A program made the translations under genes and the position numbers. Below are positions 4,493 through 57,850 of a stretch of 64,000 nucleotides of DNA, piece by piece. Under the pieces are notes generated by a model. It worked only from the letters and a program-made list of their open reading frames with translations, was not told where the DNA came from and did no database searches. The stretch's first letter is position 1; each line of letters begins with the position of its first letter. The stretch lies in sequence record OQ722176.1. One strand, 5' to 3'.

Positions 4493-5473
4493 TTATTTGT
4501 TGAGCGTGAACATAGTTACATCGCCTTGAGTTTCAAACGAAGGCTTGTACCCATGCTTGCTACCATATCGTTGGAATAGACGCTTGTACAATCTAACTCG
4601 CTTCTCATTCCCATCTTTGATTGATGTCGCGATTGTATTACAGTTGTATGTCGTTGCGAATTTAACCGTTTCGTTGACTACTGTAGCGAACACTTGAAGC
4701 GGGTTTTCAGACGCGGTTAAATCATTCGTCCAACTTCCCATGTATCGAACTTGAAAATGCACTTCAACGCCGCCAACTGACTCTGGCGGATTGAAATTGA
4801 ACAACTCGCCATTATCACCCCAATTAATATCGTGCGGTACTAGAATAACACGATATGTTTGTTGACCAATCTGAAATAGACCTTCAACTGGCTTTTTGTC
4901 ACCCTTCGGGTCATCGCCTTTCGGATACATTACTTTAGCAGGCTTGTCCATAGATTCAGAGAACAGACTAGATTCACTCAAGTTTACCGATGTTAGCCAT
5001 TCAGACCACGTCTTTTTATTGCCGATTTTAGCAAATGGGATGTCGTCATGATCTAGCCATTGAGCCGAACGGTCATAAGACTGAGTAGTGTTGAACCCAC
5101 GATAATCATCACCAACCCACAGCCATTTGTGGTGCCAGATCTGATTTACTTGACGTGGCTTAGAAACAGCACCGTCTTTGTAAGTAACCATTAAACCAGC
5201 CGCAGGTTCTTGAACAGTATCAAATTCAACTGAGTCATAGAACGCTACCCCACCTTTCTTGTAGTCAATGCGTACGATATTCGGTGTGAATTGTGGATTA
5301 GCAATAGAAACTTGCGTACGAGCATCAGCAACCATTTGCTTGAACTCGTCTGGTACGTAGTCAACGTGAACATATAATGAACCACCGATGTCTTTACCCA
5401 CGCCCCATTTGCTGCGTTTAATCGCGCTACCTTTGCGAGTTTTCAACGTCGCACGTTCAAAAATCATGTTCAT
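4493..5473 (-). CDS. two-domain late protein; N-domain resembles the accessory domain of phosphorothioation-associated methyltransferases; C-domain shared with ORF 49708
   Basis: GKDIGGSLYVH..NIVR..EFDT..QIWHHKWLWVGDDY..IGNKKTWSEWL; C-domain motif KRVRLYKR. Confidence 0.6.
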   Translation of the reverse strand: MNMIFERATLKTRKGSAIKRSKWGVGKDIGGSLYVHVDYVPDEFKQMVADARTQVSIANPQFTPNIVRIDYKKGGVAFYDSVEFDTVQEPAAGLMVTYKDGAVSKPRQVNQIWHHKWLWVGDDYRGFNTTQSYDRSAQWLDHDDIPFAKIGNKKTWSEWLTSVNLSESSLFSESMDKPAKVMYPKGDDPKGDKKPVEGLFQIGQQTYRVILVPHDINWGDNGELFNFNPPESVGGVEVHFQVRYMGSWTNDLTASENPLQVFATVVNETVKFATTYNCNTIATSIKDGNEKRVRLYKRLFQRYGSKHGYKPSFETQGDVTMFTLNK

Positions 5474-6063
5474 CGTCTTGCCTCGTTGGTAATGTTTCTG
5501 ATCATTCGTACTGCGAATTGAGTATCGCCTGTCATTGCTGCTGAAGCTGCCTTATCGACGTAAAACGTGCTATCTTCAATCATGTTCAGGTGATGATAGA
5601 TTTCGCGAAAATCATGTCGGTCGTACTCGCGATCATTGAATCGTAGTGCACCTGCTTTCTTGTCATCATCGTGAACACGCTTGTACTCATCAACGACGCG
5701 AATCATTTCAGCGGCGTATTTCTTCATTGTCATGTTGTCAAGCTTCAGTCTCTTAGCTGCTGCCATGACTTCTTCACGCGGTCTATCAAGCTCAATCGCA
5801 TCTTTTAGAATGTTCAAGCTGTGAATCGTGTCAACGGCTGACTTTTCCATTCTTAGTTTATGTTCTTCAAGAGAACGATTGTGCTTTTTCAATTCACCCG
5901 AAGCAGTTGCACCAGCAATTAAGCCCGCAAATGTACCCCAGAACCCACCTTTTCGTTGCAGACGTTTTTTAACCTCTCCCTTCGAACCTGCGGTCATTGC
6001 TTGAAATTGCGCCCATCGCCCGCTTTTTTTCGCTTTGTCCATTTCTGTTAAAAATTCAATCAT
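5470..6063 (-). CDS. putative internal head protein
   Basis: MIEFLTE capsid-targeting-like N-terminus; TCTAAATA promoter upstream. Confidence 0.55.
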   Translation of the reverse strand: MIEFLTEMDKAKKSGRWAQFQAMTAGSKGEVKKRLQRKGGFWGTFAGLIAGATASGELKKHNRSLEEHKLRMEKSAVDTIHSLNILKDAIELDRPREEVMAAAKRLKLDNMTMKKYAAEMIRVVDEYKRVHDDDKKAGALRFNDREYDRHDFREIYHHLNMIEDSTFYVDKAASAAMTGDTQFAVRMIRNITNEARR

Positions 6064-6088
6064 AGTTTTAACCCCTTATTGTTTATTA

Positions 6089-6097
6089 TATTTAGAC
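6089..6097 (-). promoter_or_regulatory. late promoter variant GTCTAAATA
   Basis: Same 9-mer precedes the inh-like operon and gene 34. Confidence 0.7.
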
Positions 6098-6104
6098 AGA
6101 AACG

Positions 6105-6132
6105 AAAAAAGGGCGACCGAAGTCACCCTTTT
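6105..6132 (-). terminator. intrinsic terminator
   Basis: AAAAAAGGGCGAC-cgaa-GTCACCCTTTT; TTCG loop on minus strand. Confidence 0.85.
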
Positions 6133-6144
6133 AATGTGGTTAAA

Positions 6145-6771
6145 TTAACCGTAGATTGATTTGATGTTATCGAAAAACGCACTTGATTTGTTCACTTTAG
6201 CAATCACATATGTTGCATTAGCACGAATCAATTTGGTAACATTGATTTTCTCAAGCTCTTCTTTTGGTAGATTTGCTTTATTAACAATATCTAAAATCTC
6301 ACGCGCATGGTCACGTTGAGCAATAGAAGACAAGTGGCGAATTTGTTGCTTTGTTTCTAGAGCTTTAAACGCATCAATTGCTTGTTGCCCTGCAACGGCA
6401 ACTGACAGACCGAGACCACGATTCAACGCACGAGTCAATAGCTCCTCAAACCCTCGAATAGGCTTGCGAGGCGACTTTCGTTTCGGGATGTCGATTGCTA
6501 GACGACCTTTAGTGTCTAGCGTGTAAACGTAAACTTCAACTGAGCCAAACTTTTCAAGACGGCAGACGATAATTTTATCTGACTTTTGTACGTTTGCTTG
6601 AACTCGACGACGTAGAGTTTCGCTGTATTCCCCGCCGTTCAATGCGTACACGATTTCAGCTACTGTTAGTTCACGCTTCTCTAGAAGATCGTGAACAGCT
6701 TGTCGAAATACACTGCGTTTTAGTGTTTCATTGTTTGCAAGTGCTTTGCGTACGATTTCAATGTTAGTCAT
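6145..6771 (-). CDS. hypothetical basic early protein
   Basis: 208-aa ORF, GAGAGA SD. Confidence 0.75.
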   Translation of the reverse strand: MTNIEIVRKALANNETLKRSVFRQAVHDLLEKRELTVAEIVYALNGGEYSETLRRRVQANVQKSDKIIVCRLEKFGSVEVYVYTLDTKGRLAIDIPKRKSPRKPIRGFEELLTRALNRGLGLSVAVAGQQAIDAFKALETKQQIRHLSSIAQRDHAREILDIVNKANLPKEELEKINVTKLIRANATYVIAKVNKSSAFFDNIKSIYG

Positions 6772-6787
6772 GATATATTTCTCTCAT

Positions 6788-7063
6788 TTAAAGTGGTTTT
6801 TCAACGGGAACTTGTAGTTCACTGAACTGCTCATTGCAGTATTGCACATAAGCTTCATGGAAGCTATCAAGCTCATCGTCAACAATAATCTGTTCGCCGG
6901 TGTCGAATACATACATAATGCAATCGTGCATACCAGTGGCAGTGTTATACATTGGTTCAGTTGTGAATCTCACACCGCACGGCGTGAAAAGCTCAGTTCT
7001 GACTTCAGGCGCAGAAACTTGTTCTGCGTTGTATTCAGCAAATGCTTTTTCAAGAATAGTCAT
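6788..7063 (-). CDS. hypothetical early protein
   Basis: Start moved to MTILEK after AGAGAGCACATT leader. Confidence 0.7.
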   Translation of the reverse strand: MTILEKAFAEYNAEQVSAPEVRTELFTPCGVRFTTEPMYNTATGMHDCIMYVFDTGEQIIVDDELDSFHEAYVQYCNEQFSELQVPVEKPL

Positions 7064-7095
7064 AATGTGCTCTCTATATTGTCTCAACGAAAACA

Positions 7096-7124
7096 AGTTT
7101 AGGCTAAGACAATATCAATGTCAA
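7096..7124 (-). promoter_or_regulatory. sigma70-type early promoter
   Basis: TTGACA-17-TAAACT. Confidence 0.8.
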
Positions 7125-7613
7125 TTACTTTTTGCGCCATTTTGCAAGTTTTTCATCATATTCGCTGTGCTTCCACAAATCAAACACGATTGTCCCACTC
7201 TGAAACCACCACACTAGTGCAATTGTATCATTCAGCTTAGGATCTTTCGGGTTTTTACCAGTGTAAAGCTCAGTACTCGGGTGTGAGTGGTAGATGGCTT
7301 TCTTGACCGCAAACTTATACCCCGTCTCTGGCTTACCGACTTCTTTCGGCGGGTGAATGTTACCTAGATACGCGACTTGATAAACCGTGTTTTTGAACAC
7401 AATACGACTAGAGTCGATATTGAAAAGCAACGTCTGATACTTAGCAGCATTCGGTGCAATTTTCCATTTATGCTTCGGTTTAGTCTCAAGTAGCTTGTCA
7501 ATCTCAGGTTCAGGTATCATCTTGCCTAGATTGTGATTCCCCCATTCCTCATCAATTGAAAGACTGATATGAACACCGTATAGAGTGTTCTCATATTCGT
7601 TGAATCGAAACAT
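7125..7613 (-). CDS. hypothetical late protein
   Basis: 162-aa ORF, last gene of late operon; MFRFNEYE N-terminus. Confidence 0.7.
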   Translation of the reverse strand: MFRFNEYENTLYGVHISLSIDEEWGNHNLGKMIPEPEIDKLLETKPKHKWKIAPNAAKYQTLLFNIDSSRIVFKNTVYQVAYLGNIHPPKEVGKPETGYKFAVKKAIYHSHPSTELYTGKNPKDPKLNDTIALVWWFQSGTIVFDLWKHSEYDEKLAKWRKK

Positions 7614-7617
7614 GTTA

Positions 7618-8130
7618 TTACCTCAGATAAGTAAAGCTGTTTGATTGGCGTTCATGAACCAGTAGTTGACCACGAAGTTTAACCCAGTGTTCAATAGTTT
7701 TCAGATCATGCGAATCGCGACGACCGATATGCCAGTCATGAATAATATCAGCCGAAAGCGGTTGATACATTTCATCACCCCGACGATAAGTAGGCATCCA
7801 CTTAGGCTTGAACTCGTCTTCGATTACAATCACTAGATCTTCGTCACCTAGCGGACAATCTAGTTTAATTGCGGTTAAATCGACTTCAGCCGCAATCTCA
7901 GCGTCTTTAATTGGAATCGCGTCTGATTCATCGACTAGATCGCATGTCGTCTTAGACTCGATTACAGTGCATTCTAGCGGCACATCAGAGTTGTTAACAA
8001 TTTCGTTAGACATTAGCTCTTCGATCATCTTGCTTTTAGTAAGTGCATTGTCGAGTTCAATGTCGTAGTGCTTCAACGCGAATTCAGCTACGCCACGTTT
8101 GGTTTGTTTCTTCAGATATTCAGTAATCAT
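7618..8130 (-). CDS. second Inh-like protein
   Basis: VAEFALKHYDIELD..TKSKMIEEL and C-terminal RGQLLVHERQSNSFTYLR parallel Inh; divergent from uvsW as T4 inh is. Confidence 0.65.
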   Translation of the reverse strand: MITEYLKKQTKRGVAEFALKHYDIELDNALTKSKMIEELMSNEIVNNSDVPLECTVIESKTTCDLVDESDAIPIKDAEIAAEVDLTAIKLDCPLGDEDLVIVIEDEFKPKWMPTYRRGDEMYQPLSADIIHDWHIGRRDSHDLKTIEHWVKLRGQLLVHERQSNSFTYLR

Positions 8131-8138
8131 AATTTCCC

Positions 8139-8345
8139 TTAGACCTTAATCGTTACCCATACATTGTCGTTCAAGTCGAAGAAAGTTACCGTATCGGTAG
8201 ACTTTTCATTTTTTCGCATTTCTTCGCGATTTGTTTCTAGTACAGGTAAATAATGTTTACACAATGTTCCGTGATATTTTCGACCGTCGCGTTCGAATTT
8301 AAGACAACCCTTGTCAAACTTCGACATCATTTCGACTCGTGTCAT
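8139..8345 (-). CDS. small hypothetical protein (possible SH3/WYL-like barrel)
   Basis: DGRKYHGTL..TVTFFDL..W pattern. Confidence 0.55.
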   Translation of the reverse strand: MTRVEMMSKFDKGCLKFERDGRKYHGTLCKHYLPVLETNREEMRKNEKSTDTVTFFDLNDNVWVTIKV

Positions 8346-8358
8346 GTTTTTAGACCCC

Positions 8359-8366
8359 TATAAATA
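8359..8366 (+). promoter_or_regulatory. T4-type late promoter for uvsW
   Basis: TATAAATA. Confidence 0.85.
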
Positions 8367-8376
8367 CAGTTATACA

Positions 8377-8385
8377 TATTTAGAC
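8377..8385 (-). promoter_or_regulatory. late promoter variant GTCTAAATA
   Basis: Divergent from the uvsW promoter; upstream of 8345/8130/7613. Confidence 0.7.
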
Positions 8386-8408
8386 AAAACTCGCATAGAG
8401 AGAAAAAC

Positions 8409-9938
8409 ATGGCAGATATTAAAATTGAGTACTTCGATGAGAGTTATGCGAGAGTCGTAGCAGAGCCAAGCATTACTCATGAAATGATTGACTACTTTTC
8501 ATTTCTGACTGACGGGTACAAATTCAACCCTAAATTTAAAATGGGCATATGGGATGGTAAGATTCGACTAATGACTTATCAAGGTTTCTTGCCATATGGT
8601 CTAGTCGGACAAGCTAGAGCGTTCGCATCAAACATGATGTATTCGATTGAAACTGACCCGATGATTGATCCAGTCGAGAAAATCACTCGCGAAGATTTTG
8701 AAGCATGGGTTGCGTCGCTTGATATTTACGGCGGTAGCAATAAAATCGACCCGTATTGGTATCAAATGGACTCAGTGTTTCATGGCATCAACCATCAGCA
8801 TAGTCTATTAAATCTACCAACATCAGCCGGTAAATCGTTGATTCAGTCGTTAATAACTCGCTGGTTCTTAGAGCAAGAAGAACACGAAGAAGAAAAAGTT
8901 CTAATCATCGTACCGACTACTGCGTTGGTTCAGCAAATGCGTGATGACTTTTTAGACTATCGTCTATTCGATCACAGTGACATCTATCAGATTCGAGGTG
9001 GTGTTGACCGTGATGCAATCGGTGATTGTAGAATCGTTGTTTCGACGTGGCAATCTGCTGTTAAGCAAGACAAGTCATGGTTCGACCAGTTCGGTATGCT
9101 TCTAGTCGATGAGTGTCACTTAGCAACTGGTAAATCTCTTGATGGTATCATTAAGAAGATGACAAACTGTAAATTTAAAATCGGTCTTACTGGCTCACTT
9201 CGAGACGGTAAAGCGAACATTCTACAGTACGTGGGTTCATTCGGTGATATTTTCAGACCTGTTTCAACTGCACAGCTAATGGAAGAAGGGCAAGTAACTG
9301 ATCTGAAGATCAACTGCTTAATGCTCGAATATCCACAGCCATTGCGTGATGAAATGAAAGGCAGTTCATATCAAGAAGAAATGAAATTCATTCTTGAGAA
9401 CAAGCAGCGAAATCGTTATTTGATCAAGCTTGCGCATCATCTAAGTGCTAAGAAAGGTGAAAACACGCTATTGTTGTTCAAGAACATCAAGCATGGTAAG
9501 TTGCTGTACGAAGCATTGAAGAAAGTTTATGACCCTGAGAAAGTGTTCTACGTGTCAGGTGAGACTAAAACCGATGACCGTACGCATGTGAAGAAGATTG
9601 CAGAAGACATTGATGGTGCGATTATCGTCGCGTCGTATGGTGTATTCTCGACTGGTATCAGTATCAAGAAACTTCACAACGTAATCTTCGCTCACCCAAC
9701 GAAGAGTAAGATCATCAACTTGCAGTCGATTGGTCGTATTCTACGTAAACACGGTTCGAAAGTTACTGCGAAGCTGTTTGATATTATCGACAACTTAGCA
9801 ATCAAGCCGAAACGTGCGAACGCTAAGAAGCCGTACACTCACGTAAATTACACAATGAAGCATGGGATGCAGCGTATTGAGCTTTACAACCAAGAAGAGT
9901 TCAAATATGCAGTTAAGAAAGTAGACCTTGCCGCATAG
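8409..9938 (+). CDS. uvsW: UvsW SF2 DNA helicase
   Basis: LPTSAGKS, DECH, GLTGS, QSIGR(V/I)LR motifs. Confidence 0.97.
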   Translation: MADIKIEYFDESYARVVAEPSITHEMIDYFSFLTDGYKFNPKFKMGIWDGKIRLMTYQGFLPYGLVGQARAFASNMMYSIETDPMIDPVEKITREDFEAWVASLDIYGGSNKIDPYWYQMDSVFHGINHQHSLLNLPTSAGKSLIQSLITRWFLEQEEHEEEKVLIIVPTTALVQQMRDDFLDYRLFDHSDIYQIRGGVDRDAIGDCRIVVSTWQSAVKQDKSWFDQFGMLLVDECHLATGKSLDGIIKKMTNCKFKIGLTGSLRDGKANILQYVGSFGDIFRPVSTAQLMEEGQVTDLKINCLMLEYPQPLRDEMKGSSYQEEMKFILENKQRNRYLIKLAHHLSAKKGENTLLLFKNIKHGKLLYEALKKVYDPEKVFYVSGETKTDDRTHVKKIAEDIDGAIIVASYGVFSTGISIKKLHNVIFAHPTKSKIINLQSIGRILRKHGSKVTAKLFDIIDNLAIKPKRANAKKPYTHVNYTMKHGMQRIELYNQEEFKYAVKKVDLAA

Positions 9939-9943
9939 ACACG

Positions 9944-21101: not shown

Positions 21102-21653
21102 ATGAAAGTTCAAATCGTTTTTGCGCACGCCATGAGCAAGTCGCCACACGCCCCTTTCGGTAATCAAAACGCACTCCCTTGGAATCACAACAAAGAAGAC
21201 TTAGCACATTTCAAAGCCACGACCATGAATAGTGTGCTTGTGATGGGTTCTAAGACCTTCGAATCACTACCGGGTAAACTTCCCAATCGACCTCATATTG
21301 TGCTTACTAGCAAGCTGCACAGTGACGTTACAGCTAAGAACGGTCAACGCGCCGATGTCTATTGTAGCTGTGATGACTTCGAAAAGTTAATTACCTACAT
21401 TGAAAATGTTTATCTTATCGAAGGTTTTGATAAAATAAGTGTTATCGGTGGCCCTAGTGTTATCGAGTCTGCATTACCTTTTGCAGACTGCATATATAAA
21501 ACTACGATAGCTGAGAAAATCGAAGCGTACGACGTTGCGATTGACTTAACTAAAATTTTCATGCATTTCCCACACGCGGAAAAGCAGAATGTCATTGAAT
21601 GCGAGAATGGTTCAATGATATTCATCGACAAGTTAACAAAGGGTGACTTATGA
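21102..21653 (+). CDS. frd: dihydrofolate reductase
   Basis: LPW..EDLAHFK..VMGSKTFESL..LPNR..VIGG. Confidence 0.95.
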   Translation: MKVQIVFAHAMSKSPHAPFGNQNALPWNHNKEDLAHFKATTMNSVLVMGSKTFESLPGKLPNRPHIVLTSKLHSDVTAKNGQRADVYCSCDDFEKLITYIENVYLIEGFDKISVIGGPSVIESALPFADCIYKTTIAEKIEAYDVAIDLTKIFMHFPHAEKQNVIECENGSMIFIDKLTKGDL

Positions 21654-22390
21654 TTTTTAAGAATAACATTGGATGGTACGCAGGCGCGGGTTCAGTTCGT
21701 CATGATTTCTACATCAACGGTGTGATTGAAGAGCCAGAAGATTACAACGAAATGCTTCAAATTCTTCACACTGCTTCTGAAACTGACATCATTTATCTGC
21801 ACTTGAACACGCCTGGCGGTAACTTTGCTGCGGCTTGTCAAATCTGTGATGCGATTATGCAATCTAAAGCGGGTGCAGTTGTTGCATGTGCTGAGGGTGA
21901 AGTATGCAGCGCAGGTACTATGATTTTCCTTGCTTGTAATGGCTGGCATGTATCACCGTTTTCAACGTTCATGTTCCATACTTCAAGTGGCGGTCAAATC
22001 GGTAAAATGCCTGATACGCTGAAACAAGCGAAAGCACACGAAGAGCACTTGAACCGCGTATGTGGTCTGCTTTACGATCCGTTCTTCGACGCTGACGAAA
22101 TCGACATGATCATCAACCATAACCAAGACTTGTGGTTGACGCCTGACGAAGTAACTGAGCGACTTCAATTGATGTCTCAGAAGTTCGAAGCTGACATTAA
22201 AGAAGCTGAAGAAAAAATCGCTGGTGATATTGAGGCTCAACTTGAAGAACAAATTGCCGAGCGTGTTGCTGAAAAGCTACGTGAGCTACAAGAAGCTGAA
22301 GCTGAAGAACTTGAAGAGTTCGAAGAAGAGATTGAAATCGTCGAGAAGCCGAAGCCAAAACGCACGCGCAAAACTGTGAAGAAAGGCTAA
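21650..22390 (+). CDS. ClpP-like serine protease with acidic coiled-coil tail
   Basis: YINGVI, LHLNTPGG, CSAGTMIF, FMFH. Confidence 0.85.
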   Translation: MIFKNNIGWYAGAGSVRHDFYINGVIEEPEDYNEMLQILHTASETDIIYLHLNTPGGNFAAACQICDAIMQSKAGAVVACAEGEVCSAGTMIFLACNGWHVSPFSTFMFHTSSGGQIGKMPDTLKQAKAHEEHLNRVCGLLYDPFFDADEIDMIINHNQDLWLTPDEVTERLQLMSQKFEADIKEAEEKIAGDIEAQLEEQIAERVAEKLRELQEAEAEELEEFEEEIEIVEKPKPKRTRKTVKKG

Positions 22391-29447: not shown

Positions 29448-30293
29448 ATGATAGATGTTTTGTTGAGATATGACGCAAGGATCATCAATAGCCGAAAGAT
29501 AGTCATCTACACAGATGAAAATCGTCTCAGTCTTATTGTGAAACTCGCGAAAGAACTCGACGGGATGTACAAAAAGTGCGACCCGGGCAGTTCAATTGGT
29601 TGTATACAGATGGAAAAATGCAGAGTATACGTCAAACCAACATCTAATCCTGGCATCGAGAATGAACGCAATTTCTATACTATTGTAAAGCAACACATTG
29701 ATTCTGGCTGTAAGCGGATTAAAATTGGTGGGCGTCTTATAAAAGGTGTTCAGTCGATTGAAATGACTGGTCATGACACGAAAAATAATAAGAAAGCCGA
29801 TATGGTCTTGAAGACAATAAGCGGCGATTTCCCGATTTCAATAAAAAAATCAAATGCAGAGCGTTGGGCGAGTACTGACGTTATTCACGGCACAGAAGCG
29901 TGTAAACTGTTAAATCGCATGGTATCGAAGAGTATCGTTACTTTGACTGATTTCTCAGATGACGGGAAGGTAAAACGATTGAGTCAGCCAATAGCGAGAC
30001 GACTTCGCGACGATGAGATTAATCACGTCGTATTCGGCTCGGATATTCTCGGTAACGGTCTGGTCATTGTTAATAGCTTTACTCTAGATGATTTTGTATT
30101 CAAGCGCGGTACTTTACATATTAACGGTGAGGTGCTTTTAGATTCAAATGATGTAAAAGACACAATATACCACCCGTATATGATGATTAGAAATGATGCG
30201 TGTCGCCGTTCGAAGGCTTTGCCTTATGGTGTTCGCGTTGAAGTTGTATTCGAATCAAGAATTACGAAAAATACGATTGTTTACGAGGAGTAG
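29448..30293 (+). CDS. putative PD-(D/E)XK-fold nuclease-like protein
   Basis: KKADMVL..PISIKK motif. Confidence 0.45.
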   Translation: MIDVLLRYDARIINSRKIVIYTDENRLSLIVKLAKELDGMYKKCDPGSSIGCIQMEKCRVYVKPTSNPGIENERNFYTIVKQHIDSGCKRIKIGGRLIKGVQSIEMTGHDTKNNKKADMVLKTISGDFPISIKKSNAERWASTDVIHGTEACKLLNRMVSKSIVTLTDFSDDGKVKRLSQPIARRLRDDEINHVVFGSDILGNGLVIVNSFTLDDFVFKRGTLHINGEVLLDSNDVKDTIYHPYMMIRNDACRRSKALPYGVRVEVVFESRITKNTIVYEE

Positions 30294-36008: not shown

Positions 36009-36194
36009 ATGAAATCTAAAGGATTTACTCTAATCGAATTGATGGTCGTGATTGTCATTTTGGGTATCTTAGCGACGATTGGCGCAGGTGCATTGGGCAT
36101 CGGTCAAACTACAACATATACGACTGAACCGCAAGCCGTTCAATACGAGATTGACGGTCAGTTAATGCAATGTACTCCCGTGTGGAGTAATTAA
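36009..36194 (+). CDS. prepilin-type N-terminal cleavage/methylation mini-protein
   Basis: MKSKG|FTLIELMVVIVILGILA class III signal peptide; 61 aa. Confidence 0.85.
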   Translation: MKSKGFTLIELMVVIVILGILATIGAGALGIGQTTTYTTEPQAVQYEIDGQLMQCTPVWSN

Positions 36195-43997: not shown

Positions 43998-44224
43998 TTA
44001 CAGCAAAAGAAGCACGAGCACGCAGGAAGAAACTTCCTGCTGCTGTAACGAAGTCGCTTGAAGAACTTGATTTGGCGGTGCAACTTGCATCGCCGTCGAA
44101 GAATCGCGTCGATTTCAAAACGGAAAAGTTGACTGAGAGTGAGCGTGATACTCTACGAGCTATTTTGATTAGCTTGGGGTATGAAGCTTATATCGCCGGT
44201 GAAAAACTTGAGGTACTGTGGTAA
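43994..44224 (+). CDS. hypothetical protein, MITA..LGY..W family copy 1
   Basis: Similar to 45120 ORF. Confidence 0.7.
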   Translation: MITAKEARARRKKLPAAVTKSLEELDLAVQLASPSKNRVDFKTEKLTESERDTLRAILISLGYEAYIAGEKLEVLW

Positions 44225-44439
44225 TGAGCAACTTTCTTCGAATTCTAGAAGACATGTGCCGCGATTTTCGCGGTGAATTGAATCAAGCTGCAACGGCAGA
44301 GGTAGATTACTACCTAATGCAATTATACGTTGCGTTACTTTCTATCGGGTTTGCGGTTCAAATTGCAATTTTCGTTGCATTTTATGCCGTGTTTTATATC
44401 CCGATGAGTCTAATCGCTAGAGTGTTGGGGATTAAATAA
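44224..44439 (+). CDS. putative membrane protein
   Basis: C-terminal hydrophobic helix. Confidence 0.6.
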   Translation: MSNFLRILEDMCRDFRGELNQAATAEVDYYLMQLYVALLSIGFAVQIAIFVAFYAVFYIPMSLIARVLGIK

Positions 44440-44456: not shown

Positions 44457-44723
44457 ATGCTAAAGTCTTTTATTGAACTATCACTTAACGAAATGACATA
44501 TCAAGAGTTGCGTGATCTCACGATAAACGAGATTCACGCACTCGTTAAGAAGCTGAAAAAACAGCTTCCGAAAGAGTACAAAGACATTATCGACGAATTA
44601 GAACCTGATATGTACGAAGATCTGATTGCAGAAATTGCGTACGATGGTGGGTTAAAAGGTAAGCGATTTGTCAACTTAAAAATCCCGAAGCGAATCTTAG
44701 ATAGGTACGCTGACTACTTCTGA
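44457..44723 (+). CDS. putative internal head protein
   Basis: MLKSFIELSLNE N-terminus; ATTAAATA 44431-44438 upstream; GGAGG SD. Confidence 0.5.
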   Translation: MLKSFIELSLNEMTYQELRDLTINEIHALVKKLKKQLPKEYKDIIDELEPDMYEDLIAEIAYDGGLKGKRFVNLKIPKRILDRYADYF

Positions 44724-46336: not shown

Positions 46337-46582
46337 ATGACGCACGATTTGAATATGCTTCTTGAGCAGTACAACCTAGCAAATTTCGAATGCGACGGTG
46401 ATTTTGATGACTATTACTGGTCAGTAGCAGAATGGATCGGACAGACTGTGTTCAGTCACGGTACAATTCGCAAGCACGATATTTTAGAACTGCTTTGCGA
46501 CTTGCTTGAGGTCTCAGAAGACCAAATCAACGTAGATGACGTTGACGAATTTTTATCTGAAGTTTATGAGGTAATTGCATAA
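46337..46582 (+). CDS. hypothetical acidic protein
   Basis: 81-aa ORF, AAGGT SD. Confidence 0.7.
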   Translation: MTHDLNMLLEQYNLANFECDGDFDDYYWSVAEWIGQTVFSHGTIRKHDILELLCDLLEVSEDQINVDDVDEFLSEVYEVIA

Positions 46583-49677: not shown

Positions 49678-49685
49678 TATAAATA
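49678..49685 (+). promoter_or_regulatory. T4-type late promoter
   Basis: TATAAATA upstream of 49708. Confidence 0.85.
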
Positions 49686-49707: not shown

Positions 49708-50589
49708 ATGATTATTTTTGAACACGACGAAACGTTAATTGAAGCGTTCGACCGACCTGTTCCATACAGATGGGATGCTATGCACAATGAAGCTAGTTTC
49801 ACAGTAGGCGGTACGCAATACATGGCAACAATTCAAGACCGTGACACGCCACGCGGTGTAAGCATATATGTAGCATTCCAACGAAAAGACCGCGAAACTG
49901 GTAATTGGACGCACACGCTTGCAAAGGGTTCGCCTAAAGATGCAATGACAGTATTGAGTACAATTCTAGCTGCTACGTTTGAAAAAGCCTCTGAAATTCA
50001 CCCAGATGAGATTACGTTCAGTGCGTATTCAGATGAAGATCGCAACGATGCAGACAAACGTTTCCGACTGTACAAGCGTATGGCAGAGCGATATGCAAGC
50101 AAGATGGACTACACGGTTCACGTTATGGGAAATAGCTTCACGGTTAAGAACAATAACCCGCCGAAAGTTCGCAGACTGCACAACGACGGTATTAAAAAGG
50201 ACGAAGAACTAACGTACGTCATTTTCCCGAATACTAACGCATTCACATGGGCTAAGTTATTCTGGCTAGACAACGACGGTGATTATATTCGATTTGCATT
50301 ACCACACGGTCGAGTTTACATAGAACGAAAATCAAGTGATGTTGTTCACATTGAAGCAACGACCCCACGCGGTAAGTTCAACCACTTAGATTCGGCTGAG
50401 ATTTGGCTATCAATGCTAGGTGATGTTACAGTTAAAACGAGGACTGGTCGTACATTCGAGATTTCAGAAAAAGGTGCGATTCTTGATGCAGGTGATATGA
50501 TTTTGTGTGAGCAAGATACATTGTATTACGTCGAATCAGAAGAAGATTTCAGCAATATCTGGGGCTATGAACTAGAAGATATTAGATAA
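49708..50589 (+). CDS. putative internal head protein; N-domain paralogous to C-domain of ORF 4493-5473
   Basis: TLIE|AFDRP; KRFRLYKR motif; own late promoter. Confidence 0.6.
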   Translation: MIIFEHDETLIEAFDRPVPYRWDAMHNEASFTVGGTQYMATIQDRDTPRGVSIYVAFQRKDRETGNWTHTLAKGSPKDAMTVLSTILAATFEKASEIHPDEITFSAYSDEDRNDADKRFRLYKRMAERYASKMDYTVHVMGNSFTVKNNNPPKVRRLHNDGIKKDEELTYVIFPNTNAFTWAKLFWLDNDGDYIRFALPHGRVYIERKSSDVVHIEATTPRGKFNHLDSAEIWLSMLGDVTVKTRTGRTFEISEKGAILDAGDMILCEQDTLYYVESEEDFSNIWGYELEDIR

Positions 50590-50592: not shown

Positions 50593-50619
50593 AAAAGGGA
50601 GCTAATTGCTCCCTTTTTT
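50593..50619. terminator. bidirectional terminator
   Basis: AAAAGGGAGC-taatt-GCTCCCTTTTTT. Confidence 0.9.
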
Positions 50620-50621: not shown

Positions 50622-52265
50622 TCATGGCGTTAATGGACTACGCTCTTTTACAAGACGCTCTTCGTCGATTTTAATTTCAACGGCACGCATGAAGTTTGCG
50701 ACTTCAGTCAGTTCATGCAAACGGTCTTGCTTTTTGCGCTCAGAAAGAACACTGAATTTTTCATGCTTGTTCTGTTTCGTTAGACGAATCACCGCATCAA
50801 ACTCAGACAGTTGAACCAATTCAGCTTCAAACATCGTATTACGGTTGATGATAAATTCACAATCGCCTTTCTTCCCGTGTTTTCCAGATGCCAGTACAGG
50901 CAATCCTTCAGCTTCGATAACAAACACAACGTTCAGTTTCTTATCTGATTCTAGCATATCACGCATTGTTGGTTTGCTGTTCTTATCAATTGCATTCACA
51001 ATAGTCTTAGACGTTGATTCAACGAAATCACACGCGACTGTTGGGTTGCTTGACGATGAAATAAACGCCGTTGACACAAACACACCAGATTCAAGAATTG
51101 ACCCAACTCGCTTGCTGCTCATTTCAGTACCGCGATACAGTGTCATTGCACTAGCAGACTTACCAGCTTCAGCAAATGCTTGGTCTAGACGTTTGATAAT
51201 CTCAGACGACTTATCAGATTCTTTACCGTGAATCAAAGCTTCGTTAACTTTCCATGCATTATGAGAAGCAGAATAACGAGCGATAGCCGCTTGTGTAAGC
51301 GCAGACAATCCCGCGAATGAATCTTCCTGCATTAGTTGCAGTGAAAGACGCTCATATTGCGCTGTATGCGCACGAGAACGCGATTCCATCAAGCAAGCTA
51401 GTACGTCACTAGGGTTTTTAGATTCACGTACGTACGAGTTGACTGCTTCAGCTAGAATCGGTAGTTCTAGGTTCATGTCGATAACACCGCGTGCAGCATT
51501 AGCCAATGACGAATCCGATTCAGTAAGTGACAGTTCAGTTAAGCGTGCGTTTTGTGTTGCGCTGTAACGAGATTCAAACTGTGGCATTTGAAGAACTTCA
51601 TTTGGAACACGAGCGGCAGGGTTTTCTTCAACCCATTGACCTAGTACGTCGTCTTCATAGTCTTCGTATCCAACATCGGCAGTTATGATAATCGTCTTTT
51701 TAGATGAAATATCAGTTTCAGTTGCCATTTTAGCAGCAAGCATGTTGATTGTTTCTTCCGATGCTTCGACTAGTTTATCAGCATTATAGCCAGGTTTAGT
51801 GATCACGAAGAAGCTGAAATCTTCAGCCATTTCATTCTCGCTGCCGCTCATTACTTTAGTGGTTTCACAGCCGTAGCGTAGTTTCTTGAATAGCGTCTTA
51901 ACGCGCATATCAAACATTTTACCGCTACCTAGCTTTTGAATTCGCATTGATACAGCATTAGCGCGAGTTTTAAGCATGAAACTCTGAACAAGAGTCACCA
52001 GAGTGTCTTGGAACTTTTGTTGATCTCCCATTTCACGAATAGTCAACCCGCCTTTCTTGCCACGCATAGCTGAGACAGTACAGAACCATGCACGCTTGCT
52101 ACGGTTGCCAATGTCAGTTTTAGTTTTAGTTGTGAACGTAACAACAACGTCACGAGCTTCGCCGTTCATGTCGATCACAAAGAATTTGTTTTCTTTGGTC
52201 GAGCGAGCCGGATAGTAGTCGTATGTTGCGCTCATGTTTTCAGTTAATTGTTGAAATCCAATCAT
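50622..52265 (-). CDS. alt: Alt-like NAD:protein ADP-ribosyltransferase
   Basis: MIGFQQLTE start; NAVSMRIQK (cf. T4 DACMLRILK); TLYRG, FISSS, GDCEFII R-S-E motifs; near gene 30. Confidence 0.75.
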   Translation of the reverse strand: MIGFQQLTENMSATYDYYPARSTKENKFFVIDMNGEARDVVVTFTTKTKTDIGNRSKRAWFCTVSAMRGKKGGLTIREMGDQQKFQDTLVTLVQSFMLKTRANAVSMRIQKLGSGKMFDMRVKTLFKKLRYGCETTKVMSGSENEMAEDFSFFVITKPGYNADKLVEASEETINMLAAKMATETDISSKKTIIITADVGYEDYEDDVLGQWVEENPAARVPNEVLQMPQFESRYSATQNARLTELSLTESDSSLANAARGVIDMNLELPILAEAVNSYVRESKNPSDVLACLMESRSRAHTAQYERLSLQLMQEDSFAGLSALTQAAIARYSASHNAWKVNEALIHGKESDKSSEIIKRLDQAFAEAGKSASAMTLYRGTEMSSKRVGSILESGVFVSTAFISSSSNPTVACDFVESTSKTIVNAIDKNSKPTMRDMLESDKKLNVVFVIEAEGLPVLASGKHGKKGDCEFIINRNTMFEAELVQLSEFDAVIRLTKQNKHEKFSVLSERKKQDRLHELTEVANFMRAVEIKIDEERLVKERSPLTP

Positions 52266-52297: not shown

Positions 52298-52305
52298 TAT
52301 TTATG
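52298..52305 (-). promoter_or_regulatory. late promoter variant CATAAATA
   Basis: Upstream of corrected alt start. Confidence 0.65.
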
Positions 52306-52934: not shown

Positions 52935-52959
52935 ATCACGAAAAAGTAGTTTTCGGGTA

Positions 52960-52988
52960 TTGACAATAACACACCAATACCCGATAAT
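52960..52988 (+). promoter_or_regulatory. early promoter
   Basis: TTGACA-17-GATAAT. Confidence 0.8.
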
Positions 52989-53034
52989 AAACACATCAAG
53001 ACGAGATACACAAACTACTTTAAGAGAGAACATT

Positions 53035-53865
53035 ATGACAATCACTAAATCAGAAATGAAAGCAATCGCAATCGACCTAATGAGCGGCAACAATCTAATG
53101 CAACGCGATTTGCTTGCTGAAGGCTGGTCTTTTGAGTTTTCAACTCGTAAAGCTGCACTTGGTGATTGTAACTACCGTACTAAAGTTCTTCGCCTTTCTG
53201 AGAAATACTTGAACGCTCGTACTAAAGAAGAGCAAATCAACACAATCACTCATGAAATGGCTCACGCAATCGCGTACACTGATTTCAACGAAACTGGTCA
53301 CGGTGCAATCTGGAAACGTGTACACCGTCAACTAGGTGGTACGGCTGAACGTTGTTCAAAAGTTTCTAACCCAGAAGCAGTAGACAGCAAGTACGTAGTT
53401 TTCTTCGAAAACAACAAAGGCGAACTTGAAGTTGTTCAGAAAATGGATCGCATGACACGTCGTTTTCAGCCAGTACACATCAAGTCTCTATACTTGAAAG
53501 GTCGTAAAGCTGAAACTGAAGGTCAACTTCGTTGTGTATCTTCAGCGACTTTCAAAATCATCAAAGCGAATCTTGAAGCGACAAAAGCTGACAATGCTAA
53601 AGCAGTTGAGCCAGTAGCTCCTAAAGCTGAACCTAAAGCAGAAAAGAAAGAAGCGCCTAAAGCTGCTCCTGCTAAAGTATCTGCACGTGGTCAAGCTGCT
53701 CGTGACGCAATCGCAGAAATCGTAATGACTACAACTCACAAAGGTTGCAAGTCAGTATCTTTCGAACAACGCGGTAAATACAAAGATTGGTACATCATGA
53801 TTGAACTAGACGCTCACACAATCGAGCAGCGCCTAGACACTTTCAAAAAGAAACACAGCTTGTAA
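53035..53865 (+). CDS. SprT-like zinc metalloprotease
   Basis: ALGDC, HEMAH (HExxH), GHGAIWK; start corrected. Confidence 0.85.
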   Translation: MTITKSEMKAIAIDLMSGNNLMQRDLLAEGWSFEFSTRKAALGDCNYRTKVLRLSEKYLNARTKEEQINTITHEMAHAIAYTDFNETGHGAIWKRVHRQLGGTAERCSKVSNPEAVDSKYVVFFENNKGELEVVQKMDRMTRRFQPVHIKSLYLKGRKAETEGQLRCVSSATFKIIKANLEATKADNAKAVEPVAPKAEPKAEKKEAPKAAPAKVSARGQAARDAIAEIVMTTTHKGCKSVSFEQRGKYKDWYIMIELDAHTIEQRLDTFKKKHSL

Positions 53866-53877
53866 TTCTCTCAATCA

Positions 53878-53897
53878 GCCCCGAAAGGGGCTTTTTT
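53878..53897 (+). terminator. terminator
   Basis: GCCCC-gaaa-GGGGCTTTTTT. Confidence 0.9.
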
Positions 53898-53903
53898 AGG
53901 TTT

Positions 53904-53974
53904 GAGGTGGAAAAATTCCGTCTCATCTTAGTAGAATTAGTAGTTTTAGTAATATTAGAGTTATTAGTAAAATT
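53904..53974 (+). repeat. 71-bp iteron/hairpin cassette, copy 2
   Basis: 62/71 identical to reverse complement of 11300-11370. Confidence 0.9.
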
Positions 53975-54004
53975 GTTTAAGAACCGCCTTGATAGCCGTA
54001 TAAT
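53975..54004 (+). promoter_or_regulatory. GTTTA-class promoter
   Basis: GTTTAAG-17-TATAAT. Confidence 0.8.
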
Positions 54005-54022
54005 GTACGTCGAGGTGATGAA

Positions 54023-54262
54023 ATGATAACGATATACACAATTCCTAACTGTGACGGCTGTCGTCACGCTATCTCCCTCTGTAAGTTCAAAAACGTCCCG
54101 TATACTGTAATCGAGTTGCAGTCTCAATCTGACATCGACGAATTGCATAGAAAGCTTGGTGGTGTTCGTAATATTCGAGTTCCGCTTGCCATGCACGGTG
54201 ATACATACATTGGTCACCTGCCTGAATTAAAGCGATTTGTTGATAACCAGACGTATAAATAA
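54023..54262 (+). CDS. glutaredoxin
   Basis: YTIPNCDGC, VP, YIG. Confidence 0.88.
   Translation: MITIYTIPNCDGCRHAISLCKFKNVPYTVIELQSQSDIDELHRKLGGVRNIRVPLAMHGDTYIGHLPELKRFVDNQTYK
54254..54261 (+). promoter_or_regulatory. T4-type late promoter
   Basis: TATAAATA upstream of gene 24. Confidence 0.85.
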
Positions 54263-54320
54263 AAGAAATTACGTACATTCTCTCCGCTGAAATGCGGCAA
54301 TAAATTAAAGGAATCATACA

Positions 54321-55217
54321 ATGACTGTATCGAATAGTAACGGTTTACCAGACATTGTTACTGTCCAAAAACGAGTATATCCGCTAGTATTTACGGAAAT
54401 CGTTTCTGAACAGCCAACAACCCAGCCCGTTGCAACTGCTTATGGCTTTAAAGCTGTACCTGAAGCTGACGACGGAAGCGGCTGGACTCAATTCGGGTTT
54501 AGACTTGATCGCTGGTATGCTGAAGTAAAATCTTCAAAAATGAAGACTGAAATCTCTCTTGAAACAATTCAAGATATGGCTGCACTTGGTGTTAGCAATA
54601 CTGTTATTGTTGACTCGTTAGCTGACCAAATCGCTGATGAGATCAATAGTGACATTATCGACTCACTAAACGCAATTTCAAGCGTTGGTACTGCTATCAC
54701 TCTTGTGGGTAACAATGATTGGGAAAAAGGTCAAGACCTGTATACTCAAGTTCATTTAGCTGCGGCAGCAATTGAAAAGACAACTGGCTGTAAAGGCACA
54801 TATGTCGTTGCTGGTGGTGATTGTTTTGGTTACTTGACTGGCTGTGGTGTTGTTCAACGTGTCGGTGAATCAGACGTTTATAAAGCATGGTCTGGTCTAT
54901 ACATCGTTCACGACAAATACGCAACTTCTGACTATGTAACTGTTGGTGTTAAGAAAGACTTCGGTGATTACGAAATCTCAAGTTTAGTATTCAGCCCATA
55001 CAAATTTGACCGCGCAACTGATGGTGCAATTGCGTATCAGTACAAAGGCACTGATCCAAAATCATTCCACCCTGTGTATGGTGTTATTGCACGTTATGCA
55101 CTGACTGTTCCGCCACTTGAATCTGGTCAAACAGGCGCAGAAGAAATAGACTGGGACAATCTTGGTGCATTAGCTAACAGTTCTAAACTGTCTTACACAT
55201 ACGCAGTAACAGTATAA
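54321..55217 (+). CDS. 24: capsid vertex protein gp24 (short form)
   Basis: LPDIV..LVFTEIVSEQPTTQPVATAYG; SLETIQDM; IARYAL. Confidence 0.8.
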   Translation: MTVSNSNGLPDIVTVQKRVYPLVFTEIVSEQPTTQPVATAYGFKAVPEADDGSGWTQFGFRLDRWYAEVKSSKMKTEISLETIQDMAALGVSNTVIVDSLADQIADEINSDIIDSLNAISSVGTAITLVGNNDWEKGQDLYTQVHLAAAAIEKTTGCKGTYVVAGGDCFGYLTGCGVVQRVGESDVYKAWSGLYIVHDKYATSDYVTVGVKKDFGDYEISSLVFSPYKFDRATDGAIAYQYKGTDPKSFHPVYGVIARYALTVPPLESGQTGAEEIDWDNLGALANSSKLSYTYAVTV

Positions 55218-55225
55218 GGTGTGAC

Positions 55226-55738
55226 ATGAAAAATCATTATGTAGATAATAAAGCTCTATACGCATCTTTGTGCGAATGGAAAGACGACATGAATAATAAT
55301 CCTGATGCTGTGATCCCCGTCCCAGACGTTGTGGCAATCAGCATCATGAAGATTAGCGAGAACTTATCTCGCCGTTACAACTTTAGTGGTTATACTGCTA
55401 CGTGGAAAGAAGAAATGATTGGTGACGCAATCGAGCACTGTTTGCGTTACATCAAGAATTTCGACACTGACAAATACAACAATCCACACGCTTATATCAC
55501 TCGTATCTGTTTCAATGCGTTCGTGCAACGTATTAAGAAAGAAAGAAAAGATACAGCGATTAAATATAAAGTATTCTTATGCGATTCGTCTAACTACACC
55601 GCTGACGGTGAAGAAACAGACTTCGAGTTTCTTCAGCAAATGTTAGAACGTGTCAATTCTTATGAATCTGGCAAGACGCCTAAAGCTCATGCAGACGAAA
55701 AGAACGAACCAATTAACTTACAGAAATTTTACGATTAA
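55226..55738 (+). CDS. 55: late sigma factor gp55
   Basis: YVDNKAL, LSRRYNFSGYT..EMIGDAIE, NPHAYITRICFNAFVQRIKKE. Confidence 0.97.
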   Translation: MKNHYVDNKALYASLCEWKDDMNNNPDAVIPVPDVVAISIMKISENLSRRYNFSGYTATWKEEMIGDAIEHCLRYIKNFDTDKYNNPHAYITRICFNAFVQRIKKERKDTAIKYKVFLCDSSNYTADGEETDFEFLQQMLERVNSYESGKTPKAHADEKNEPINLQKFYD

Positions 55739-55747
55739 GGAATTAAC

Positions 55748-57193
55748 ATGTTAGGTAACTTTGACTCATTTCTGAGTGAAAATCGCCGTCAAACTCAGGG
55801 TGGAAAAATCTACCCTAAGTTTGGTCAAGTTATTGTTGAGCTAGGCACTGCTTCTACCGAGTTCAGCAAAGGCAAAGGCGTTGAAACAACTATCGGCATG
55901 ATGGAAAAGGCAAATGAGCTTAAATCTATCATGGTATCAAAACTTGCTGAAGATGTCAATGTTGATGAGAAAAACTTCGACATTAATCTAAGCGAGAACG
56001 TAAGCACCATCAACCTGCTTATGGAAAACGAATTCTTAGCAATGCCTGCTCATGCTCTACAGCAAGTTAAGTCAATGATCATGTGTACTGAAGCACGTCT
56101 TCCTAGTATCGTGATTAAAGGCGGTGATTTGAACGATGTAGTGACTGAAGCAACTAAGCTAGGTTACAAAAAATCAGACATTCACGTTGTTATCCCAATG
56201 AGTGAAATGAAGATCAATCTTGCAGATTCTGACAAGCTGATCATTGAATCACTTTCATTTGACGGTCTAACAGCGTCTGAAGTACTTGCGCAAGCTGCAC
56301 CAATCAATCTAGGCGACGTTTACGTTACTGTTGAAAGTGTGTCTAGCGACGCTCAACTTTCTGAAATGAAAGAAATCAAGATCAAGACAGCGAATCGCGC
56401 TATGACACTTGGCTCACTAAACCGCCATGTTATGGATCAATTTGTTGTTAAAGAAGCGAAAGACGTATCATACGCACGTGCTAAAGCTGAAGACAGTGGT
56501 CTACCAATGCTTGAAGGTTTCAAAGCGTACGATATGAAGCAGAAAATCACTATGATTGAACATGCTCAGAACGCATTCACCAAAGAAATTGCACGTGCTC
56601 CGCTTTCTGCTACAGCATGGCAAAATCTTGTAGATGTTAAAGAAGCTTATTTCGATAACGGTTGGAAACTGAAGCACAACAACACAAGCATCGTTCTGAC
56701 AAACGCTGGTAACGCTATGCGTGCTAATCGCGTGTGTGAAGAATATCGCGTTGAGCTATCAGAAGCAGGTTATCCTCTTCTTGATATGGTAGCAATGATG
56801 GAAAGTAAAGGCGCGACTCGTTTCGATTGTAAATCATTTGCTGAAGCAATGATGAAATTCGACGGTTGTGTTACGCCAGAACGTCAAACTGTTACTGCAT
56901 TCGTTACTGAATCAGCGGCAAATCGCGTGTTCCACCCTCAAGTGATGTCAAGCCTACGTCCAGTGACTGAAATGGTCGACGACGTTGACGGTCTTGTTCG
57001 TGCTCTTGCAAATGACCAGTTCAGTTCGTTTAAAGTAGCTCAGTCATTCTCGGAAGCAATGCTTGACCAAGAAACGCTTTACTCTATGATGGAAAGCATC
57101 GTATCTGAAGGCGTAGACGTATCAGTTGACGGCACTTTGATTGATTTCAAAGTAAACGATACGCAATACCACATTAACATCGACATCAAATAA
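55748..57193 (+). CDS. putative internal head protein with degenerate P-loop-like N-domain
   Basis: MLGNFDSFLSE start; YPKFGQVIVELGTAS..KGKG. Confidence 0.5.
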   Translation: MLGNFDSFLSENRRQTQGGKIYPKFGQVIVELGTASTEFSKGKGVETTIGMMEKANELKSIMVSKLAEDVNVDEKNFDINLSENVSTINLLMENEFLAMPAHALQQVKSMIMCTEARLPSIVIKGGDLNDVVTEATKLGYKKSDIHVVIPMSEMKINLADSDKLIIESLSFDGLTASEVLAQAAPINLGDVYVTVESVSSDAQLSEMKEIKIKTANRAMTLGSLNRHVMDQFVVKEAKDVSYARAKAEDSGLPMLEGFKAYDMKQKITMIEHAQNAFTKEIARAPLSATAWQNLVDVKEAYFDNGWKLKHNNTSIVLTNAGNAMRANRVCEEYRVELSEAGYPLLDMVAMMESKGATRFDCKSFAEAMMKFDGCVTPERQTVTAFVTESAANRVFHPQVMSSLRPVTEMVDDVDGLVRALANDQFSSFKVAQSFSEAMLDQETLYSMMESIVSEGVDVSVDGTLIDFKVNDTQYHINIDIK

Positions 57194-57202
57194 GGTGACA
57201 AA

Positions 57203-57850
57203 ATGAAAAAGTTCTGCAATTTTCTATCTGAAGTTCAGAAATACAGTTCAGCGGCTACGTCGATTCGTGGTAAAGAAGTTGCAGCGTTAGTTAAGTTGTT
57301 CAAGTCAGGCATGTTCACGCCTGGCGGAACAGCACTTGATTACGGCGCTGGCAAATACGGTCGTAACGCTGACTTCTTACGTAGCGAAGGTATCAAAACG
57401 TATGCATACGACAAATTCAATGGTACATCGGCAGATGGGTGGGAAGCTGTTAGCTTGACTATTCCAAATGGTGAGACTTTCGATACTGGCTTCACGTCAT
57501 ACGTATTGAACGTTGTACCTGAAGAAGTCGAAGCTGAGATCATCCGTGACGTTGAATCTCGTACACGTGGTAAAGTGTTCCACATTACTCGCGGCACTGA
57601 CATCACACAGACAGTTTTCAACGTGATTTCTGGTAAGTCTAAAAATGACGTAATGATGCAATTCATTGCTCAAGAATATCCAGAGATTCATGGTCAGATT
57701 GTCGCAGGTGGCGGCACTAAAGAACTTGCGAAAGAAATTTCCGAGCGCGGTGTGGTTACAGCTAAAGACAGTTTTCAACGTATCCCAGACTTGTCAAAGT
57801 ACGGTTACAAGAAATCTGGTTCAGGTGCTTCTGTAGTCTGGACAAAATAA
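57203..57850 (+). CDS. class I SAM-dependent methyltransferase with capsid-targeting-like N-terminus
   Basis: ATSIR..LDYGAGKYG..YAYDKF..FDTGFTSYVLNVV; MKKFCNFLSE. Confidence 0.85.
   Translation: MKKFCNFLSEVQKYSSAATSIRGKEVAALVKLFKSGMFTPGGTALDYGAGKYGRNADFLRSEGIKTYAYDKFNGTSADGWEAVSLTIPNGETFDTGFTSYVLNVVPEEVEAEIIRDVESRTRGKVFHITRGTDITQTVFNVISGKSKNDVMMQFIAQEYPEIHGQIVAGGGTKELAKEISERGVVTAKDSFQRIPDLSKYGYKKSGSGASVVWTK

Follow-up and report, generated by a model that had tools for sequence, protein, structure and literature searches.

The stretch of DNA analysed here, a window of 64,000 nucleotides (nt) from record OQ722176.1, is 100% identical to Vibrio phage vB_VspM_VS2 (VS2), a KVP40-like Schizotequatrovirus and relative of T4. 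It contains 96 genes with checked start codons, and the annotation was carried over from the 95%-identical phage QD01. Eight of the encoded proteins, labelled c1 to c8, were named in an initial annotation as a dispersed cohort with N-terminal leaders for capsid targeting and cleavage by the prohead protease gp21. All eight N-termini that it quoted are present at the starts it assigned. We consider it fairly probable that most of c1-c8 are head-internal cargo of the T4 internal-protein (IP) type. Judged by sequence comparison, the case appears strong for c6, good for c7, c8, c1, c2 and c5, doubtful for c3 and weak for c4.

The head genes 20-67-68-21-22-23 lie directly upstream of window position 1 in VS2. 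As they end just before that position, window positions 1-8345 represent the stretch from gene 23 to uvsW, the T4 counterpart of which is occupied by gene 24, hoc and inh (NC_000866, the record from which the T4 sequences were taken; accession given in PMC2993671). VS2 encodes the gp21 prohead protease (49% identical to T4 gp21) along with the core proteins gp22, gp67 and gp68. Core-protein starts in KVP40 and VS2 are MKFISE (gp68), MELQLLIE (gp21), MQIKE (gp22) and MNLTE (gp23). Two paralogues of Inh, the inhibitor of the prohead protease, flank the c1-c3 cluster (2305-2808, + strand, and 7618-8130, - strand). They share 22% identity (E about 1e-5), and the copy at 7618-8130 begins MITE. The candidates and the signals around them are listed in Table 1.

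Table 1. Candidate proteins and nearby transcription signals, with positions in the window (aa, amino acids; pI, isoelectric point; the arrow marks a module boundary).
Feature	Positions	Strand	Description
Bidirectional terminator-like hairpin	4467-4490		Closes the c1-c2 cassette
c2	4493-5473	-	326 aa; leader MNMIFE; two modules with an L-x-E↓S linker between them; overlaps the end of c1
c1	5470-6063	-	197 aa, pI 9.5; leader MIEFLTE; Gly-rich hydrophobic segment
TCTAAATA, late-promoter-like octamer	6089-6096	-	33 nt before c1; kept in KVP40 and F86, CATAAATA in D479
Terminator-like hairpin	6107-6132	-	Upstream of the c1-c2 cassette
c3	7125-7613	-	162 aa, pI 9.2; leader MFRFNEYE
c4	44457-44723	+	88 aa; leader MLKSFIELSLNE; weakest candidate
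TATAAATA, exact	49678-49685	+	30 nt before c5, behind a terminator hairpin; kept in KVP40 and F86
c5	49708-50589	+	293 aa; leader MIIFE, then a spacer that ends in LIE ahead of AFD
Hairpin	50593-50617		Common to c5 and c6 at their convergent 3' ends
c6	50622-52265	-	547 aa; Alt-like ADP-ribosyltransferase; leader MIGFQQLTE (9 residues)
TATAAATA, exact	54254-54261	+	Before gp24, at the head of the gp24-gp55-c7-c8 run
ATTAAATA inside gene 55	55559-55566	+	189 nt before c7; kept in KVP40 and F86, along with about 30 surrounding nt
c7	55748-57193	+	481 aa; leader MLGNFDSFLSE; N-terminal domain (about residues 14-234), disordered linker, C-terminal domain
c8	57203-57850	+	215 aa; leader MKKFCNFLSE; class I S-adenosylmethionine (SAM)-methyltransferase fold

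Leaders and folds of the candidate proteins

The gp21 of T4 cleaves behind the Glu of L/I-x-E. For packaging, the initial 10 residues of IPIII are enough; targeting is governed by positions 4 and 7, and processing by positions 8 and 10 (PMC9026906). Proteins that stay in the mature virion have propeptides of between 7 (Alt) and 65 residues (gp23), and the known packaged cargo consists of Alt and three small internal proteins (PMC9026906). T4 IPII and IPIII start MKTYQEFIAE, IPI starts MKTFKEF, Alt MELITE and gp68 MLLIPE (NC_000866). Seven of the eight candidates have (I/L)-x-E within the first 12 residues, the exception being c3 (MFRFNEYE). A leader of T4 IP type, which spans about 7 to 19 residues and in which positions 4 and 7 or thereabouts are aromatic or hydrophobic, P3 is L/I and P1 is Glu, is present in c7 and c8. 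A shortened form occurs in c1, c2, c5 and c6; c4 is marginal and c3, with no L/I at P3, does not fit. Pfam and NCBIfam scans of c1-c8 gave chance-level matches only (SAC3 for c4, NrnA for c3).

The leader of c8 (MKQFCNFLAE in KVP40) agrees with IPII and IPIII at M1, K2, the aromatic residue at position 4, F7, L/I at position 8 and E10. We identified 240 relatives, mostly metagenomic. Among the 107 with at least 16 residues ahead of the conserved GGTSI motif, 78 have an L/I-x-E that is complete by residue 14 (in most cases at residues 8-10), compared with 24.6±4.2 in composition-preserving shuffles. Some start in near-identity to T4 IPII (MKQFSEFLSE, MKSFSEFITE), and a few have no N-terminal extension. 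One relative lies within a T4-like structural gene cluster in which nearby proteins start alike. The AlphaFold model of c8 (predicted local distance difference test, pLDDT, 89; predicted template modelling score, pTM, 0.86) has a confident core from about residue 20, and residues 1-8 fall below a pLDDT of 50. The best 50 of 302 Foldseek matches in the PDB (E<=0.001) are nearly all SAM-dependent methyltransferases, with template modelling scores of 0.34-0.55. The residues of motif I (D-x-G-x-G) and the acidic residue after strand 2 (D46, G48, A49, G50 and D70) are invariant in 113 relatives. No Pfam match was found for c8 itself, and about one third of the relatives among the matches listed have a precomputed match to PF13489. 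A PDB sequence search with the c8 family gave no match, and tblastn of c8 against isolated phages recovered KVP40-like Vibrio phages only.

In c7, the IPII/IPIII arrangement is offset by one residue, with the aromatic residue, the F and L/I-x-E at T4 spacing. There are about a dozen close relatives, and the leader is kept down to 38% identity. A profile search with the N-terminal domain recovered 37 remote relatives, many of which, on marine T4-like contigs, start MKKFTQFLNE, MIRFSEFITE, MKSFNSFLNE or alike; one is on marine contigs with a T4 spanin and a gp33-type coactivator. Nine of ten tested remote relatives match PF06414 (Zeta_toxin) at E<=0.01, six of them above the Pfam cut-off, and some also match AAA_33 (PF13671). 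The predicted model of c7 has two domains with a disordered linker between them. It matches a 'Zeta toxin domain containing protein' in BFVD (E=1e-7), and a fold search of the PDB gave no significant match (best E=0.038). Walker A (G-x-x-G-x-G-K) is present in most aligned remote relatives and is lacking in c7 and three close orthologues, so an active kinase was rejected. Based on these models and profiles, c7 may be a Zeta-toxin/kinase-fold-like protein that has lost its P-loop. It resembles the Zeta/PezT and AAA_33 P-loop kinases in the profile relationship of its N-terminal domain to phage proteins matching PF06414 and PF13671 and in the BFVD match. It differs from them in the loss of Walker A across its clade, the extra C-terminal domain, the non-significant PDB fold matches and the lack of an antitoxin context.

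The protein c6 matches phrog_802 (Alt-like ADP-ribosyltransferases) with E=4.5e-79. BLASTP against T4 Alt gives E=2e-5, with 23% identity across 224 residues of the transferase domain. There is also a weak PDB match to an ADP-ribosyltransferase domain, and no Pfam match. In a single pairwise alignment with T4 Alt, the Arg (LYR), S-x-S and the last Glu are aligned, and the first Glu of E-x-E is Asp in c6. The leader is MIGFQQLTE in VS2 and KVP40, MIGFQELNE in F86 (48% identity) and MLTFNELKE in D479 (31% identity). The annotated start of the F86 Alt-like gene (L008 7953-9689) is 16 codons upstream of the conserved MIGF Met, which is probably the true start. With an ADP-ribosyltransferase (c6), a SAM-methyltransferase fold (c8) and a Zeta-toxin/kinase-like fold (c7) in the set, the earlier description of the candidates as mostly of unknown function is overstated.

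KVP40, F86 and D479 all retain the seven-residue leader of c1, MIEF[L/I]TE, although the D479 homologue is only 36% identical. The D479 homologues of c1 and c2 directly follow gene 23 on the same strand, within the gene 23 operon. The leaders of c2 are swapped between relatives (MNMIFE, MSIIFE and, in D479, MIEFIAE), and the mature start behind them is conserved. The internal LSE/FSE pair that had been noted in c2 is indeed present, at about residues 165-171, in the linker between the modules. This boundary, L-x-E↓S, is kept in VS2, KVP40 and F86, and the D479 homologue stops three residues past the motif. The C-terminal module of c2 is related to the N-terminal domain of c5. Relatives of c5 begin with MIIFE directly followed by AF, or with MIIFE and 6-7 variable residues ending [L/V]-x-E before AF (LVE in nt-1). 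Thus, a hydrophobic-x-E triplet (L/I in seven of eight relatives) abuts the conserved mature start. PDB sequence searches with the c5 family and c1 returned nothing useful.

The D479 homologue of c3 (36% identical) starts MKTFSEFHYE, which agrees with T4 IPI at six of the first seven residues and also has no L/I at P3. For c4, the [LI]-x-E immediately ahead of MTYQEL is kept in KVP40 and F86, and there is little else in its favour. The second Met of c4 was considered as the true start and rejected, given that the first ATG has a GGAGG Shine-Dalgarno sequence. Directly upstream of c4, a 71-aa open reading frame (ORF; 44224-44439, +), absent from the initial annotation, starts MSNFLRILE, the same M-x-x-F-x-x-[L/I]-x-E layout as the leader of c6.

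Several other ORFs have early motifs. Three small ones, starting MMITE (57945-58217, +), MTILE (6788-7063, -) and MTHDLNMLLE (46337-46582, +), adjoin candidates or follow a ATTAAATA element. A 61-aa ORF (36009-36194, +), with CGTAAATA 42 nt upstream, starts with MKSKGFTLIELMVV followed by a hydrophobic stretch, as in the N-terminus of a type IV prepilin, and its QD01 homologue is annotated as PilE-like. Its LIE is part of the pilin signature and not of a gp21-type leader. On an uncultured T4-like contig (L020 1684-11307), proteins of a gp13-gp15-sheath-terminase cluster start MRLEELFE, MRLYE, MKLKDLKE, MKLSDIFE and MKLSE. Starts of this type may be a lineage-specific leader variant. An AAA_33 protein is encoded two genes past the terminase gene on the same contig. 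In VS2, a ClpP-like protease subunit is encoded between frd and uvsX (21650-22390, +).

Late-promoter-like elements and gene cassettes

An xxTAAATA element is located 26-40 nt upstream of c1, c4, c5 and c6. The initial claim of such an element for every candidate holds loosely. Of the other four, c2 overlaps c1, c3 is third in its operon, and c7 and c8 come after gp24 and gp55, downstream of the TATAAATA at 54254 and the conserved ATTAAATA within gene 55. The octamer before c6 is CATAAATA at 52305, 40 nt upstream. Before c4 it is ATTAAATA, 26 nt upstream and overlapping the end of the preceding gene. TCTAAATA precedes c1 and also the operon starting at 8345 (octamer at 8384), of which c3 is the third gene, as well as tail fibre gene 34 (17896). 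Exact TATAAATA octamers precede uvsW, c5 and gp24, and a fourth copy is within gene 59. KVP40 and F86 share these late-promoter-like octamers, and D479 does so in part.

The c1-c2, c5 and c6 genes form hairpin-bounded cassettes that have late-promoter-like octamers only and no strong sigma-70-like site. The same layout of a hairpin followed by an octamer is found at T4 alt (NC_000866). The c7 and c8 genes follow gp24 and gp55 at gaps of 8-10 nt. The gp24 vertex protein at the head of this run (54321-55217, +) has 298 aa, compared with 427 in T4. It contains no L/I-x-E at any position and may escape trimming by gp21, in contrast to T4 gp24 (start MAKINELLRE).

The xxTAAATA element is also found before genes that are not candidates, namely uvsW, gp34, inh and the genes starting at 29448, 36009 and 46337. 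Across both strands of the window there are 28 NNTAAATA sites, compared with about 73 expected from base composition, a depletion that fits selection against stray late promoters.

Motif frequency and rival explanations

A number of observations weigh against packaging of the candidates, and several of them would be expected if the motifs arose by chance, or from the composition of AT-rich 5' coding regions, in ordinary intracellular proteins that are never packaged, an explanation that we regard as unlikely. Of the 96 window genes, 23 (24%) have (I/L)-x-E among their first 12 residues, including those for gp32, gp41, gp59, DsbA, gp33 and thymidylate synthase. The rate in interior 12-residue windows is 12.5%, and L, I, K and F are generally enriched at protein starts (residues 1-12). 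With so many genes carrying it, replication genes among them, the plain motif does not discriminate, and it was rejected as a classifier on its own. The motif is found in 6 of 13 genes close to a promoter and in 17 of 83 others, a difference of marginal significance (one-sided Fisher P=0.053), so the contrast that had been drawn with neighbouring early genes is marginal as well. In addition, c7 and c8 share an apparent operon with gene 55, a gene that is early or middle in T4 (alt and gene 68 are late; PMC9697503). Lacking an L/I at P3, c3 is without a canonical cut site. The F86 orthologue of c8 has FME in place of L/I-x-E, the c7 orthologue of phage 1.081.O has Ala at the position of the cut-site Glu, and one distant c8 relative is found amid early-type genes. 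Counts within a family are not independent, because the members share kinship. The literature searched yielded neither a virion proteome nor an N-terminal sequence or a transcript map for any KVP40-like phage. Some members, such as the basic c1-c3, could be head-core or DNA-condensing proteins, and a short amphipathic N-terminal helix could be conserved for other reasons.

Composition does not, however, reproduce the excess of motifs. When residues 2-12 of every window protein were shuffled, 13.4±3.0 genes with the motif were expected and 23 were observed (P=0.003). There is therefore an excess of about 10 genes, near the number initially proposed, and residue order matters; the shuffles of the c8 family described above miss its excess as well. 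More specific patterns were searched among 2370 ATG-ORF starts of KVP40, with the genome record searched in separate blocks. The T4-derived pattern aromatic-x-x-F-[L/I]-x-E was recovered in c7, c8 and one internal ATG only, with about 0.10 true gene starts expected. F-[LI]-[STA]-E within the first 12 residues is found at the true starts of c1, c7, c8 and gp68 only (0.26 expected, P=1.6e-4, a type of value that is optimistic because the patterns were picked after viewing T4 and the candidates). Leader swapping ahead of an invariant junction is not expected from composition, and c6 has a homologue, T4 Alt, whose packaging is established.

Alternatively, the leaders may direct proteins to the prohead that then act as scaffold-core, head-size or DNA-condensing parts for the enlarged KVP40-type head, with some degraded and expelled before the DNA is packaged. 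We think this rather unlikely. The location of the basic c1-c3 (pI 8.6-9.5) between gene 23 and uvsW, beside the two inh paralogues, is consistent with such a role, as are the D479 homologues of c1 and c2 straight after gene 23, the F-[LI]-[STA]-E start of the core protein gp68, the loss of Walker A in c7 and the exit of most T4 core fragments from the head (PMC9026906). Against it, c6 appears to retain its catalytic positions (R, S-x-S and E, in the single pairwise alignment with T4 Alt), and the cofactor-binding residues of motifs I and II are invariant in the c8 family; enzyme cargo suits delivery better than scaffolding. Distant relatives also have the same leader type on apparently intact P-loop kinases. 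It is very improbable that the leader is a signal unrelated to the capsid, for example for membrane association, oligomerisation or degradation. Such a signal would suit the short, amphipathic form of the leaders with their aromatic residues, the loose helix predicted by AlphaFold and the Gly-rich hydrophobic segment of c1. However, c8 agrees position by position with the experimentally defined T4 capsid-targeting sequence, leaders of this type co-occur with gp21-type proteases in T4-like genomes, and gp68 shares the start type.

Packaging as head-internal cargo thus remains our preferred reading for most of the candidates. As a cohort with cleavable leaders, the set initially proposed is sustained by the comparative evidence for c6, for c7 and c8, and for c1, c2 and c5. 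Its (I/L)-x-E rule was too loose, c3 is without a cut motif and the evidence for c4 is thin.

A predicted route into the head and its implications

Given the leaders, their conservation and the protease and core genes present in VS2, a route for targeting, cleavage and ejection can be proposed from the likeness to T4. The leader of 6-12 residues, in which L/I-x-E is usually preceded at a short distance by an aromatic residue, would be a capsid-targeting sequence that holds the cargo on the gp22/gp67/gp68 scaffolding core during prohead assembly. The gp21 protease, the gene and motif for which are both present, would then cut after the Glu. The mature protein would remain among the packaged DNA and exit with it at infection, as proposed by analogy with T4 Alt and the internal proteins. 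The cargo would be mixed, and may include the c6 ADP-ribosyltransferase, the SAM-methyltransferase-fold c8, the kinase-fold c7 without a P-loop, c5 and c2 with their shared domain, and the small basic c1 and c3. Ejection of the candidates, and any role in countering host defences, are purely conjectural.

Like the T4 internal proteins, the candidates have a short leader ending L/I-x-E. Agreement is found at positions 4, 7, 8 and 10 in c7 and c8, and the start of the D479 c3 homologue is close to that of IPI. In both phages one leader type is found on unrelated mature proteins encoded by genes scattered in plastic genome regions. The mature parts have no similarity, and the candidates are larger (162-547 aa, compared with 95-193 aa) and include proteins with recognisable enzyme folds. 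Their leaders vary from 6 to 12 residues, some with two tandem sites. Compared with T4 Alt, c6 is homologous, with a short L/I-T-E leader, an upstream hairpin and late-promoter-like element, and a location near ligase gene 30. It differs in length (547 vs 682 aa), in an N-terminal half that cannot be aligned, in the Asp for the first Glu of E-x-E, in the location of c5 between it and the ligase gene, and in its promoter variant, CATAAATA. The ejection proteins of phiKZ-like phages and SPN3US offer another parallel. There, many head proteins, including enzymes, are cut after the Glu of a three-residue motif by a gp21-like protease, and propeptides have redundant sites (PMC9026906). These differ from VS2, in which motif and leader are of T4 type, by their S/A-x-E motif, long propeptides and separate phage lineage.

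VS2 encodes about six to eight proteins with leaders resembling the T4 head signal, and part of its injected set is probably readable from sequence. More tentatively, and at somewhat less than even probability, the T4 leader could serve T4-like phages, abundant uncultured marine ones among them, as a portable address label that loads whole families of SAM-methyltransferases, Zeta-toxin-like kinases and ADP-ribosyltransferases into heads for delivery. If so, the injected proteome could be predictable from sequence, and the proteins injected by KVP40-like phages would include three or more with enzyme folds and not only small inhibitors. Proteins that enter with the DNA act before phage gene expression and would therefore be prime candidates for counter-defence and host takeover. 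If the leaders work as in T4, candidate injected proteins could be listed from genome data, and the same leader would flag large, unstudied families of cargo enzymes in marine T4-like phages. The KVP40-like Vibrio phages under study for biocontrol in aquaculture would then bring three such proteins into the cell: a methyltransferase, an ADP-ribosyltransferase and one with a kinase fold.

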